A stretch of 64,000 nucleotides of DNA from Glycera tridactyla (GCA_965644265.1 OZ286475.1:45632001-45696000), one strand, 5' to 3'. Numbered from the stretch's first letter, positions 81 to 54,426 are shown. Numbers and translations are program-made. The notes: generated by a model from the letters alone, not told the origin.

Positions 81-149
81 TTTTCGCCAGTAGTACTCTT
101 CTCACACCATCAACCACAGTGACACCGATCAATGACATCCAGTGCTCAG
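81..149 (+). CDS. Ser/Thr-rich linker exon ending the unit that lies upstream of the window
   Basis: ttgcag|...[23 protein letters not shown]|gtatct; 69 nt, phase 1-1; same QC-x-G ending as later linker exons. Confidence 0.75.
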
Positions 150-51930: not shown

Positions 51931-54426
51931 GTTAATGATAGCCACCACCACCGCAGGCAGGCAGGCAGGCAGGGAAAGGGGAAACAGGTAGCGGGGAGGG
52001 GAAACGGGGTACATAAATCACTGAAGCTTGGTGGCTCGATGATAGAGTACCGACGATGTTTTTCACAGCCGTGGCTTCACACCTTTTTCGCAACCGTGCC
52101 TCCACATCTTTGTGCAAACGTGGCTTCACCCACAGACAGAGTTAACTGCATGGGCTACATACTGCAATCACAATCACTGCATATAGCCAAGTACCCATTC
52201 ACACCTGGGTGAAGTGAAGTGGTGGAGTATAGAGGTTCCACTCAGTTACCCCCGTTCAGAAGTGCCTCCTTGGCAAATAAAACACCAGAAGCGAAGCACA
52301 ATCAGGACTATGTTCGCTTGTTTTTGTTTCAGTGATGACAATAGAGGGTGAGGGTACAGACGGTGGCTCCCCCTGTGTGTTCCCCTTCAACTATAAGGGA
52401 GTGACGTACTACAGATGTACCACAGACGGACATGATCAGCTCTGGTGCTCCACAACCGATAACTACGCCACCGATAAAAAGTGGGGCAACTGCATAGGTG
52501 AGTGTGCGCAATTTTATCACGATCATGTCCAAAAAAATGAAATATTGAGGTTTTAGGTCCACTTTCTGCACTTGAGTAGGCTAAATCAGACCACCTGCCA
52601 AGGAGGAGCGAAGATGAAGGGTGAAACATTCCTGCATGGTAGGACCGGGGATTGAACCCCAGACCCATTACACGCCGGTCCAGCACGTTACCACCGAGCC
52701 GCCAAGGCAGGCTCATGATCATATCATACGGATAGTTGTGTATATAATGGCGGCCTCGCAAATCTCGACCGAGCACAAAAAGTTACTTCCATTCCTTTTT
52801 TAATTCATTTTATTGATTAATTGATTAATTGATTGATTCAATCATTCAATCATTCAATCACTCCTTCGTTCATTCATGAATGTATGTGTAGGTAACAAAA
52901 TGTTATTTTCTAGTCATAGGTCACAAGATAAAACATAATATAATACGCGTTGTTATTTGATATATCTCAAAAGACCTCCGGCCCCTGACGGGCCTACAAG
53001 ACTCGGCATTCAGACATGATTTTGAACGTCTGCAGTTTCGAATACAACGTAATTTGTGATCTCAAGTACACATGCATGTTTGGTCATCCCTCCCTATGTA
53101 TGTGTGCGCGCGTGCGTGTGTGCACGCGCGCATGTGTGGCTATATGTGTGTTTTCTTCTACGGACCAAAAAATTCAAATACTATCTCCTTCAACATTCCA
53201 TACCATAGAATCTGTGTTATGAATCTGTGTTATGTGTGGCTATCTGTTTGACATTCTGCAACATTACACATAAGTATTTAAGCCTCATAAGGATGTCCGT
53301 TATATCATTTATTTCAGTAAGGACGGTGGATGGTGACGACTGTGTGTTTCCCTTCACGTACGGAGGTGTAAGTTACGAGTGGTGTACAAGCACTGAGCAA
53401 GATCAACCCTGGTGTGGGACAGCAACAACTGTTAATAGTTTAGACAACACCAGACGCTGGGGATTCTGCGATATCTCTTGTAAGTACCTCATGGATAGGC
53501 AGACAAACAGACAGAGAGACAGAGAGACAGACACACACAGAGACAGAGTTGTAAGTTACGATTGGTGTACGAGCACTGAGCAAGATCAACCCTGGTGTGG
53601 GACAGCAACAACTGTTAATAGTTTAGACAACACCAGACGCTGGGGATTCTGTGATATCTCTTGTAATACCTCATGGGTAGGCAGACAAACAGACAGAGAG
53701 ACAGACACACAGACACACAGACGGAGAGAGTTGTAAGTTACGAGTGGTGTACGACCACTGAGCAAGATCAACCCTGGTGTGGGACAGCAACAACTGTTGA
53801 TAGTTTAGACAACACCAGACGCTGGGGATTCTGTGATATCTCTCGTAATACCTCATGGGTAGGCAGACAAACAGACAGACAGAGGTGTAAGCTACGAGTG
53901 GTGTACGACCACTGAGCAAGACCAACCCTGGTATGGGACAGCAATAACTGTTAATAGTTTAGACAACACCTGACGATGGGGTTTCTGTGACATCTCTTGT
54001 AAGTACCTCATGGATAGGCAGGCGGACACATAGATAGACTGACTGACAGACAGATGGACAGACAGACAGACAGTCTTATACTCAGTTTCTCCGTCGGACA
54101 GCAAGGCAGGCAGATAGATGAATAAGAGATGGACGGCCAGTCAAACTGACAGAAATCTAGACACATAGTTACATGCATAGACATACAAACAAACACACTG
54201 ACAGGCACAGTTACACACAAAGCCTCCGGAACCAGCCCAAATAGGTGCTAAAACTTCACGGGAAGCATGCGAGTGATGACTAGATATAACACATGACTGG
54301 ACTAGACGCAAGGAATAAACCGTCATTTTGTATCTGACATGATTTCGGAACTCACTGGCGAATAAGAGCAGGAAGTATCTTAATATCTTTTCTCTTTTGT
54401 AGATGAGCCTGATTGTCCCACTCTGA
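81..54426 (+). CDS. Large multi-exon gene (partial, open at both ends) encoding tandem fibronectin type II (FN2) domain pairs separated by mucin-like linkers: 16 units, 32 FN2 domains, 64 exons, ~7083 nt spliced
   Basis: Every FN2 exon matches C-x-FPF-x-Y-x-G-x2-Y-x2-CT...WC...W-G-x-C with 4 Cys. All exons are bounded by polypyrimidine-AG and GT(A/G)AG-type sites, have lengths divisible by 3 and join in phase 1 without stops. No start codon, signal peptide or terminal exon was identified in the window. Confidence 0.9.
880..9253 (+). CDS. Unit 1: FN2-A, FN2-B, microexon, S/T linker
   Basis: Exons 880-1044 ([42 protein letters not shown]), 2036-2197 ([45 protein letters not shown]), 2796-2819 (YEPACPSS), 9161-9253 ([31 protein letters not shown]). 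Confidence 0.85.
8339..8426. repeat. (CA)n microsatellite
   Basis: About 44 near-perfect CA units. Confidence 0.95.
9830..11792 (+). CDS. Unit 2: FN2-A (short), FN2-B, microexon, S/T linker
   Basis: Exons 9830-9967 ([40 protein letters not shown]), 10662-10823, 11385-11408 (YEPDCSLS), 11691-11792 ([13 protein letters not shown]...QRTQCTG). Confidence 0.85.
12609..17640 (+). CDS. Unit 3: FN2-A, FN2-B, microexon, S/T linker
   Basis: Exons 12609-12773, 13456-13617, 14305-14328 (YEPDCFGS), 17581-17640 ([20 protein letters not shown]). Confidence 0.85.
17948..18113. mobile_element. MITE with (C/T)AGTCGAACCTG-type terminal inverted repeats and TA flanks (Tc1/mariner/pogo-like)
   Basis: ta|tagtcgaacctg ... 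caggttcgacgg|ta; 166 bp; internal repeated GTGGTCTT motif. A TA duplication with CAGT-like ends is typical of the Tc1/mariner-pogo superfamily. Confidence 0.7.
18299..20115 (+). CDS. Unit 4: FN2-A, FN2-B, microexon, S/T linker
   Basis: Exons 18299-18466 ([42 protein letters not shown]), 18674-18835, 19257-19298 ([14 protein letters not shown]), 20011-20115. Confidence 0.9.
20800..22692 (+). CDS. Unit 5: FN2-A, FN2-B, microexon, S/T linker
   Basis: Exons 20800-20967, 21258-21419, 21750-21791, 22585-22692; paralogous to unit 4. Confidence 0.9.
23049..25140 (+). CDS. Unit 6: FN2-A, FN2-B, microexon, S/T linker
   Basis: Exons 23049-23216, 23385-23546, 24326-24367, 25033-25140. Confidence 0.9.
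25594..27429 (+). CDS. Unit 7: FN2-A, FN2-B, microexon, S/T linker
   Basis: Exons 25594-25761, 26066-26227, 26458-26499, 27367-27429 ([21 protein letters not shown]). Confidence 0.9.
27794..29617 (+). CDS. Unit 8: FN2-A, FN2-B, microexon, S/T linker
   Basis: Exons 27794-27961, 28248-28409, 28671-28712, 29555-29617. Confidence 0.9.
29966..32006 (+). CDS. Unit 9: FN2-A, FN2-B, microexon, S/T linker
   Basis: Exons 29966-30133, 30452-30613, 31061-31102, 31944-32006. Confidence 0.9.
32344..34377 (+). CDS. Unit 10: FN2-A, FN2-B, microexon, S/T linker
   Basis: Exons 32344-32511, 32830-32991, 33435-33476, 34315-34377. Confidence 0.9.
34716..36770 (+). CDS. Unit 11: FN2-A, FN2-B, microexon, S/T linker
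   Basis: Exons 34716-34883, 35202-35363, 35812-35853, 36708-36770. Confidence 0.9.
37108..38762 (+). CDS. Unit 12: FN2-A, FN2-B (extra Cys), microexon, S/T linker
   Basis: Exons 37108-37275, 37595-37756 (QNSCWC), 38204-38245, 38700-38762. Confidence 0.9.
39578..44982 (+). CDS. Unit 13: FN2-A, FN2-B, microexon, two linker exons
   Basis: Exons 39578-39745, 40280-40441, 41131-41157 (YEPDCPSTT), 43173-43247 ([24 protein letters not shown]), 44935-44982 ([16 protein letters not shown]). Confidence 0.8.
40692..41072. repeat. ~50-bp minisatellite, about 8 degenerate copies
   Basis: Unit approximately cttcgatcttaacatcatgacagtaaacagactcaaatttgtttctgatg. Confidence 0.85.
41874..41934. repeat. 19-bp tandem repeat, about 3 copies
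   Basis: tacttgtcatttccataag starting at 41874, 41893 and 41912. Confidence 0.9.
42540..42660. repeat. (GACA)n/(GACT)n tetranucleotide tract
   Basis: Runs of acag and actg units. Confidence 0.8.
44528..44850. repeat. 38-bp minisatellite, about 8.5 copies
   Basis: Unit gaaatcagcaccgagtgttccctccatattcattgccc with period 38 (44528, 44566, 44604 ... 44832). Confidence 0.9.
45652..47769 (+). CDS. Unit 14: FN2-A, FN2-B, microexon, S/T linker
   Basis: Exons 45652-45810 ([42 protein letters not shown]), 46955-47113, 47451-47474 (YEPGCQTQ), 47719-47769 ([17 protein letters not shown]). Confidence 0.85.
48113..51118 (+). CDS. Unit 15: FN2-A, FN2-B, single fused linker exon
   Basis: Exons 48113-48277, 49271-49435, 50987-51118 ([19 protein letters not shown]...VEPRILCPG). 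An assembly gap lies in the intron before the last exon. Confidence 0.85.
49623..49798. other. Assembly gap (N run)
   Basis: 176 N. Confidence 1.
51715..51925. repeat. (CA)n(CG)n followed by (CT)n microsatellites
   Basis: CA run 51715-51780, CG run to ~51792, CT run ~51864-51925. Confidence 0.95.
52141..52225. mobile_element. Possible fragment of a conserved SINE central domain
   Basis: Motif gtacccattcacacctgggtgaag resembles, from memory, conserved core domains of metazoan SINEs; not verified. Confidence 0.25.
52333..54426 (+). CDS. Unit 16 (incomplete): FN2-A, FN2-B, microexon
   Basis: Exons 52333-52497, 53318-53479, 54403-54426 (YEPDCPTL). No following linker exon was confidently found. 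Confidence 0.85.
52535..52710 (-). mobile_element. tRNA-derived SINE
   Basis: Minus strand reads gccttggcggctcggtgg (A-box-like) ... ggttcaatccc (B box, 52658-52648) ... acca, then a non-tRNA body ending taaaacctcaata. No convincing full cloverleaf. Confidence 0.6.
53367..54060 (+). repeat. Tandem array of the 3' two-thirds of the unit-16 FN2-B exon plus adjacent GACA/GA microsatellite (original plus 3 copies)
   Basis: gtaag(t/c)tacga... starts at 53368, 53551, 53733 and 53887; each copy encodes SY(E/D)WCT(S/T)TEQDQPW(C/Y)GTA..[16 protein letters not shown]. Confidence 0.9.

Follow-up and report, generated by a model that had tools for sequence, protein, structure and literature searches.

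Positions 81-54426 of the window (the whole stretch of 64,000 nucleotides of Glycera tridactyla DNA that was analysed) lie in the interior of a single, very large animal gene that is transcribed. The explanation that best accounts for the observations as a whole, to which we give a probability of about 0.6, is a giant gene spliced in series, whose product would carry clamped double-FN2 beads on glycosylated spacers and would bind a collagen-type ligand multivalently.

Motif and splice-site scans of the + strand delimited 63 exons with canonical AG/GT sites throughout. The lengths of all 63 are multiples of three, and all are in phase 1-1; the spliced model, 7,008 nt long, encodes 2,335 residues and is free of stop codons. 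The exons form 16 units, in each of which a micro-exon (M) and a Ser/Thr-rich exon (L) precede two FN2 exons (A and B). M exons are 24-42 nt long and bear a cysteine in the motif xPDC, and L exons are 48-108 nt long and terminate in QC[PST]G (QCPG). There are 10 cysteines per unit. A repeat of FN2, FN2 and linker had been proposed for this DNA; pairs and linkers were indeed found, but the linker is not a single exon, as the spacer between pairs is made of two (M and L), except in unit 16, where they are fused.

All units lie on the + strand. Unit 1, identified by motif and splice-site scans, the exon model and Pfam fn2, comprises L1 (81-149), A1 (880-1044) and B1 (2036-2197), its M exon lying outside the window. 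The exon model and Pfam fn2 gave unit 2 (M2 2796-2819, L2 9161-9253, A2 9830-9967, B2 10662-10823), with an M2-L2 intron of 6.3 kb, and unit 3 (M3 11385-11408, L3 11691-11792, A3 12609-12773, B3 13456-13617). Contig joints provided additional support for unit 4 (M4 14305-14328, L4 17581-17640, A4 18299-18466, B4 18674-18835), unit 5 (M5 19257-19298, L5 20011-20115, A5 20800-20967, B5 21258-21419) and unit 6 (M6 21750-21791, L6 22585-22692, A6 23049-23216, B6 23385-23546). Unit 7 (M7 24326-24367, L7 25033-25140, A7 25594-25761, B7 26066-26227) and unit 8 (M8 26458-26499, L8 27367-27429, A8 27794-27961, B8 28248-28409) again come from the exon model and Pfam fn2. The following four were placed by the exon model: unit 9 (M9 28671-28712, L9 29555-29617, A9 29966-30133, B9 30452-30613), unit 10 (M10 31061-31102, L10 31944-32006, A10 32344-32511, B10 32830-32991), unit 11 (M11 33435-33476, L11 34315-34377, A11 34716-34883, B11 35202-35363) and unit 12 (M12 35812-35853, L12 36708-36770, A12 37108-37275, B12 37595-37756). 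The last four rest on the exon model and Pfam fn2: unit 13 (M13 38204-38245, L13 38700-38762, A13 39578-39745, B13 40280-40441), unit 14 (M14 41131-41157, L14 44935-44982, A14 45652-45810, B14 46955-47113), unit 15 (M15 47451-47474, L15 47719-47769, A15 48113-48277, B15 49271-49435) and unit 16 (fused M+L 50987-51118, A16 52333-52497, B16 53318-53479).

The last exon seen is a further micro-exon with an EPDC motif, M17 (54403-54426), and the gene therefore continues beyond it; neither an L17 exon nor another FN2 exon was found downstream of 54426 within the window. The first and last exons are those of the original prediction, which had given about 2,360 aa and a gene open at both ends, as is observed here. 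No domain type other than FN2, and no signal peptide, TM segment or GPI signal, was seen in the window, outside which the gene ends lie.

A motif scan placed 32 complete four-cysteine FN2 modules between 924 and 53469, one per exon and each on the + strand. Types A and B alternate strictly, giving 16 pairs, in agreement with the predicted figure of at least 32 domains in 16 paired units. A strict PROSITE-like FN2 pattern had no matches, its spacings being too tight, and looser patterns recovered all 32. The reading of these exons as FN2, for which a profile search had been named as the test, was borne out: 32 of 32 scored above the gathering cut-off of Pfam PF00040 fn2 (22.2 bits; first member 52.9 bits, best E value 1.3e-19). 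The modules are 38-44 residues long with four cysteines each, and all copies have the C-x2-PF...C...WC...C pattern and the aromatic cluster. In the alignment, C4, F6, P7, F8, Y15, C18, T19, W27, C28, T30, W39 and C42 are invariant in all 32. The two types differ in the distance from WC to the last cysteine, 14-15 residues in type A and 16-18 (mostly 17) in type B; mean identity is 66% between A copies, 68% between B copies and 44% between A and B. The link from A to B is constant at 9 residues, and A together with the long-loop B would constitute one paired FN2 bead.

In FN2 domains, cysteines 1-3 and 2-4 form disulfides and an aromatic pocket binds collagen, gelatin or phosphorylcholine. Characterised FN2 proteins carry 1-4 copies and have been studied in vertebrates as collagen, gelatin or phospholipid binders. 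By score, the nearest solved relatives of the array are gelatin-binding modules, namely the third FN2 of MMP-9 and MMP-2, and fibronectin; PDC-109 was also found. Type A has an acidic residue or Asn before the last cysteine, at the position of a Phe in the MMPs. The pocket residues conserved in the array are common to all FN2 classes, and they do not distinguish between collagen, phosphorylcholine and other ligands.

The spacers contain 33-61% Ser+Thr and 4-17% Pro, with 18-43 residues between their cysteines. They had been called mucin-like, a description that we do not retain: they are too short for true mucin domains, and neither Pro/Thr/Ser domains of hundreds of residues nor VWD/CK or SEA/TM modules are present in the window. 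As the spacers are short and Pro-poor, heavy mucin-type glycosylation is not assured; they are probably O-glycosylated and would connect the beads. The predicted product is a secreted glycoprotein of extended shape that would display at least 32 FN2 aromatic pockets; because signal peptide, TM segment and gene ends are absent from the window, secretion is predicted solely from the domain type. Judged from the sequence, such a protein may bind a repetitive ligand by avidity, the likeliest candidate being cuticular or extracellular-matrix collagen, and a hydrated glycoprotein layer would then be tied to collagen. A more specific proposal, which we make tentatively, is that the bead is an undescribed module (two different FN2 with one clamp contributed by separate small exons) and that the protein fastens a glycoprotein or mucus coat to the giant-collagen cuticle via dozens of weak collagen-binding pockets.

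It is possible, though not probable, that the same protein has another role than that of a collagen anchor, as a component of mucus, tube or adhesive, as an agglutinin binding phosphorylcholine lipids or microbes, or as a gamete-coat protein of the BSP kind. PDC-109, whose FN2 pairs are established phosphorylcholine binders, is among the solved relatives, and the pocket residues are shared by every FN2 class, but the best-scoring relatives are the gelatin-binding modules of MMP-9, MMP-2 and fibronectin. With collagen as the ligand, the protein is a candidate for coupling the mucus or glycocalyx of a soft-bodied worm to its collagen cuticle, and a candidate natural collagen-binding scaffold of high avidity. 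A transcribed gene in which at least 32 FN2 domains are intact and selected would mean that invertebrates build giant extracellular proteins out of FN2 and no other module, with double-domain beads on glycosylatable spacers paralleling the use of kringles in apo(a).

Two additional cysteines flank every A-B pair. The N-side cysteine lies 8-17 residues before FN2-A, in the QCPG of the L exon; the C-side cysteine follows FN2-B at a distance of exactly 7 residues, in C-x-I-x-Y-[EV]-P-x-C, and comes from the M exon. This C-x7-C spacing is invariant in 15 of 15 spacers, which fits the M-exon cysteine belonging to the folded bead. When B exons were read through the donor, a C-x3-C tail appeared; its second cysteine is intronic, and the true partner is the one in the micro-exon. 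In the kringle relatives of FN2 the domain is closed by an N-to-C clamp. The two extra cysteines most likely form a clamp disulfide of the kringle style, which would make a compact double-FN2 bead, and the bead is thus probably a double FN2 closed by a single clamp, as far as its sequence indicates. The bracketing of an A-B pair by extra cysteines appears to be new here; the clamp itself we infer.

Instead of forming a clamp, the extra cysteines could bond between chains, or within a spacer loop. In the latter arrangement, which we consider unlikely, they would pair across the Ser/Thr-rich stretch, so that each spacer becomes a closed glycosylated loop and the beads a continuous rod. The spacer cysteines are merely 18-43 residues apart, and in unit 16 both of them lie with the spacer in one exon (50987-51118), thus behaving as a single module. 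Against this, the length of the loop would vary more than 2-fold, compared with the invariant 7 residues from FN2-B to the M-exon cysteine, and kringle relatives, as is generally known, clamp from N to C. The Ser/Thr-rich stretch itself ranges from 18 to 43 residues.

The array, with its putative clamped double beads, was compared with known systems. With MMP-2, MMP-9 and fibronectin the array shares PF00040, and over 47 residues type A keeps the aromatic cluster, as well as all four cysteines, of the third FN2 of MMP-9 and MMP-2. In those proteins, however, 2-3 FN2 interrupt a protease or stand between FN1 modules, whereas in Glycera at least 32 FN2 are the sole folded domains seen, arranged in A/B pairs with flanking cysteines and Ser/Thr-rich spacers. 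What BSP proteins (PDC-109) and ELSPBP1 have in common with the array is a functional unit of two FN2 in tandem, of a and b types, joined by a short link; they differ from it in that BSP proteins have about 110 residues and one pair, ELSPBP1 has four FN2, and neither has clamp cysteines or repeated spacers.

The architecture had also been likened to apo(a), which is a fair analogy but not a homology; the two are similar in appearance and may be similar in mode of action. Both are tandem arrays of small disulfide-knotted domains of the kringle fold group, joined in apo(a) by Ser/Thr/Pro-rich O-glycosylated linkers, and both have near-identical units prone to copy-number change; in the array, Ser/Thr-rich linkers and near-identical units (9-12) are present and O-glycosylation is predicted. 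There is no family-level homology: Pfam gives fn2 only and no kringle, and the kringle of apo(a) has about 80 residues and six cysteines (1-6, 2-4, 3-5), compared with 38-44 residues and four cysteines here. In addition, no protease domain was seen in the Glycera array, and its extra cysteine pair spans two domains, not one.

A profile search of 1.84 billion representatives returned a maximum of 27 FN2 matches per protein, compared with at least 32 here; the copy number therefore exceeds, as predicted, that of known FN2 proteins (1-4 in characterised ones, 27 at most in the library). The further claim that this type of protein is undescribed holds in part. Literature searches for invertebrate, annelid or mucin-linked FN2 arrays turned up no account of a protein of this kind, but uncharacterised predicted proteins with 10-27 FN2 are present in databases. 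They include XP_062381919 of Sardina pilchardus (17 FN2, two types alternating), KAI8499649 of Branchiostoma belcheri (19 FN2 and a mucin region), P0010 and P0039 (27 matches each) and P0003, from an ENA contig. This last one (1,552 aa, 16 FN2 profile matches, 10 six-cysteine beads by pattern) is similar to the array in its extra cysteine before FN2, its C-x7-C tail after it and its Pro/Thr/Ser spacers; unlike in the array, the clamp-type cysteines flank a single FN2 and not an A-B pair. Two FN2 within one clamp-cysteine pair were found in 0 of 162 sequences (150 matches and cluster members).

RNA support comes from one study with two public runs (X1 and X2), as short contigs that are labelled guessed RNA and cover 6 kb of the 54 kb. 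In these contigs exon bins were covered and intron bins were empty, except for one high-copy repeat; the highly covered repeat at 17971-18086 had no match in Rfam. GT..AG joints were found at 17640|18299, 18466|18674, 18835|19257, 19298|22585, 20115|20800 and 22692|23049. The first two are the L4-A4 and A4-B4 joints, seen in contigs of both X1 and X2, and 18835|19257 joins B4 to M5 across two units. M-to-L joints were present for L5 and L6, followed by L5-A5 (20115|20800), L6-A6 (22692|23049) and an approximate A6-B6 joint. In X1, M4 letters were joined to L4, to which B3 letters were also joined. The joints fall at predicted splice sites, in the order B, M, L, A, B across units 3-6, and two contigs have a unit order unlike that of the assembly. 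Since the joints, which come from units 3-6, link units in series, the array is one transcribed gene and not a gene cluster, and its exons are co-transcribed as the original prediction supposed. A search for spliced protein fragments, with the A5 exon as region and a read-through ORF as length carrier, gave two candidates, neither of them scoring.

With symmetric phase 1-1 exons, units could be added, dropped or passed over in splicing with the frame unbroken. The array might then be a store of cassettes, mostly skipped or used alternatively, with small real products of few FN2 pairs. The symmetry of 63 of 63 exons is in keeping with this, as are the joint 19298|22585, which skips 3.3 kb, and the two contigs ordered unlike the assembly. 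However, since M5 and M6 have the same sequence, ambiguous placement accounts for the apparent skip; the remaining joints link neighbours in series (L4-A4-B4-M5 and L6-A6-B6), and each of the 16 units is intact and evolves under purifying selection. We regard such a store as improbable, and retain the giant gene spliced in series.

The FN2 units are under purifying selection, with a dN/dS of 0.18-0.24 (about 0.2) between older units. Units 9-12 are four similar copies (28671-38203) with a period of 2374-2392 bp. Their exons diverge by 0.9-2.8% (97-99% identical) and their introns by 7.3-10.0%, exons being conserved 4-8 times more than introns. An assembly gap of N (49623-49798) lies in the intron between the B15 donor (49435) and the unit 16 M+L acceptor (50987). 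Because every exon is phase 1-1, the frame is maintained through the gap regardless of its content. A15 and A16 are mutually nearest (70%) and B16 is the nearest to B15, which argues that the two flanks of the gap are parts of one array. Even so, the gap may conceal complete units, which together with the near-identical copies makes the unit number uncertain. Downstream of B16 are three partial tandem copies (53533-53988, + strand, TRF and tblastn), intronic and composed of the 3' two-thirds of exon B16 with a (GACA)n tract (TRF period 182, 2.9 copies, 94% matches). They lack the first cysteine and the PF motif, and the last has a stop; tblastn found no other FN2 remnants.

The N gap, the near-identical exons of units 9-12 and the truncated exon copies would be in line with a misassembled locus or a pseudogene array in decay. 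Such a reading is hardly credible and already contradicted by the absence of stops in 7,008 nt and 63 exons, the dN/dS of about 0.2, the introns of units 9-12, which at 7-10% divergence belong to distinct copies, and the existence of spliced transcripts.

The array lends itself to studying how series of symmetric exons grow, including the relation of exon identity to intron drift. In units 9-12 it is odd that the exons are near-identical while the introns drift by 7-10%.

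Motif scans and six-frame translation recovered 32 complete FN2-like modules, all on the forward strand between positions 924 and 53469, and each of the 32 lies in an open segment of its own. The Pfam fn2 family (PF00040) scored above its gathering threshold in 32 of 32 modules, with no second family reported; the core of the original prediction, a paired FN2 array, is correct. Twelve positions are invariant in the 32-copy alignment (C4, F6, P7, F8, Y15, C18, T19, W27, C28, T30, W39 and C42). Among solved structures, the third FN2 module of MMP-9 and that of MMP-2 come closest, followed by those of fibronectin, PDC-109, factor XII and the mannose-receptor family. 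The two modules of a pair, A and B, are 44% identical between types, compared with 66-68% within either type, which indicates that the A-B pair is older than the array. Comparison with other FN2 proteins showed that the long-loop B type is not unusual as such.

The window, AT-rich animal DNA with a GC content of about 0.38, contains two runs of N, at 49623-49798 and 61475-61914. In every copy, the FN2 exon is preceded by a pyrimidine-rich AG acceptor, followed by a GTAAGT- or GTGAGT-type donor, and in phase 1. The stretch that separates the B exon of a pair from the following pair's A exon holds two additional exon types: M, a micro-exon of 24-42 nt that codes for x-P-D-C and a few Ser/Thr, which was recognised solely by its presence in public-run contigs, and L, a Ser/Thr-rich exon of 48-108 nt that ends with Q/L-C-[PST] and the opening base of the codon that follows. 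Unit 16 has a single fused M+L exon of 132 nt, which contains both cysteines. The full model comprises 63 exons, all with AG/GT borders and a length that is a multiple of three, and its spliced form of 7,008 nt encodes 2,335 residues with no stop. Its limits agree with those originally proposed (first exon 81-149; last exon, M17, 54403-54426). The model contains 161 cysteines: ten in each unit and an additional one in the B module of unit 12 (37618-37746), where it stands beside the conserved WC (S-C-W-C) as an odd fifth cysteine.

A tblastn search of both strands with ten unit exons detected no FN2 remnants beyond the model except three truncated copies of B16. These are forward-strand tandem copies of its 3' two-thirds (53533-53988, period 182), situated in the intron that precedes M17. 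Behind each of them come a duplicate of the donor region and a (GACA)n tract; copies one and two are open, and the third contains a stop. Two other tandem repeats are intronic: one just upstream of M14 (40692-41072, period about 50, also scored at 91, 99 and 141), and one just upstream of L14 (44527-44847, 8.4 copies of a 38-nt unit), which yields spurious ORFs of about 155 aa.

A run search returned two runs, X1 and X2, from one study of the same organism, whose type was taken as RNA by guess only. They contain 5-8% of the words of the segment 17560-23559. Run contigs covered the exon-containing bins of this segment and left the intron bins empty, except for a high-copy repeat at 17971-18086. 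Contig joints were compared with the predicted sites after correcting the stated cut offset, and GT..AG joints were found at predicted splice sites: L4-A4 (17640-18299), A4-B4 (18466-18674), B4-M5 (18835-19257), M to L6 (19298-22585), L5-A5 (20115-20800), L6-A6 (22692-23049) and, approximately, A6-B6. In one contig, the letters between its two pieces correspond to the end of B3 and M4, joined to L4. The identity of M5 and M6 accounts for the apparent 3.3-kb skip in the M to L6 joint. Coverage restricted to exons, together with canonical removal of introns, indicates spliced transcripts, and the B-to-M-to-L joints link units in one RNA; these joints confirm, for 17560-23559, that the exons are co-transcribed. 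Two X1/X2 contigs in this segment showed a unit order unlike that of the assembly: in one, a B6-like exon is followed by M and L5; in the other, a B4-like body with a B3-like tail is followed by M4 and L4. The RNA donor may differ in haplotype or copy number, or the contigs may be chimeras formed across repeats. The 17971-18086 sequence, in the L4-A4 intron, is a short interspersed repeat of GGTGGTCTTTATAGAG-like motifs with no Rfam match; its summed contig depth was 15,000-18,000 in both runs, versus 2-29 on exons.

Within a unit, A and B are joined by a constant link of nine residues. From B's last cysteine on, the pattern C-x-I-x-Y-[EV]-P-x-C is common to all 15 spacers and puts the M-exon cysteine exactly seven residues further along (15/15). 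The next stretch, of 18-43 residues, is 33-61% Ser+Thr and 4-17% Pro, and terminates at the L-exon cysteine, 8-17 residues ahead of the first cysteine of A. In layout, the nearest protein is P0003, a 1,552-residue predicted protein encoded on a 1.09-Mb ENA contig by a single uninterrupted 4.66-kb ORF (3001-7659 of its locus), so that its array is intronless whereas that of the window is multi-exon. Its six-cysteine FN2 beads are separated by Pro/Thr/Ser spacers, and it shares with the array the C-x7-C tail and the N-terminal extra cysteine, although these surround each single FN2. The kringle, a relative of FN2, is closed by an N-to-C disulfide. By analogy with the flanking cysteines of P0003 and with this disulfide, the two extra cysteines would clamp the whole A-B pair into a single bead. 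Alternatively, they could pair with each other over the spacer, which would then form a closed loop.

Among 1.84 billion representative proteins, a profile built from the 32 exons matched 6,402 FN2 proteins at E <=0.001. The highest number of matched stretches per protein was 27, in two database proteins (P0010 and P0039), and the top-scoring protein, from sardine, had 17. The multi-FN2 matches were labelled uncharacterised or hypothetical by named sources. None of the 162 sequences fetched had two FN2 within one extra-cysteine pair, and a full-text literature search returned no publication that describes such FN2 arrays.

Pairwise comparison of the A+B exons of older units gave dS values of 0.22-1.08 and dN/dS ratios of 0.18-0.24; each copy is under ordinary purifying selection. 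Units 9-12 (28671-38203) are four copies in one block, repeated every 2374-2392 bp. An assembly duplication was rejected, since the introns differ by 7.3-10.0% and the copies are thus distinct. Exon divergence is 0.9-2.8% and divergence drops approaching the exons; adjacent A+B exons show no synonymous difference, although the intron rate predicts about six. That synonymous change is nearly absent may reflect gene conversion centred on the exons or an RNA-level constraint.

The assembly gap at 49623-49798 starts 188 nt past the B15 donor (49435) and ends 1,189 nt ahead of the acceptor (50987) of unit 16's fused M+L exon, and is therefore intronic. A15 and A16 are mutually closest (70%) and the closest relative of B15 is B16, so the gap is flanked on both sides by one and the same region of the array. 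Entire units might be hidden in the gap; as all exons are of phase 1-1, the frame is kept regardless of its content.

Judging from its domain family, its disulfide-rich beads and its Ser/Thr-rich spacers, the product is probably a secreted, O-glycosylated, extended protein, which would act by multivalent weak binding through the aromatic pockets of FN2. No signal peptide or membrane anchor was seen within the window, which holds an internal part of the gene. The best-scoring solved relatives of these modules bind gelatin, and our preferred reading is a putative role in anchoring a layer of surface glycoprotein to collagen; alternatively, the ligand may be a phospholipid or be of microbial, tube or gamete-coat origin. 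The original view of an apo(a)-like multivalent binding scaffold is supported in part: the FN2 exons of units 3-6 are co-transcribed and the array exceeds the 27-match database maximum; binding itself is a predicted activity.

Past M17, neither L17 nor a later FN2 exon was found up to position 64000. The intron after M17 carries a Penelope-like retroelement on the reverse strand (55617-61027), after which comes the second N gap (61475-61914). Two upstream ORFs of about 380 aa had no Pfam match, and the element's 1,005-residue ORF matched reverse transcriptase (RVT_1) and, weakly, GIY-YIG.
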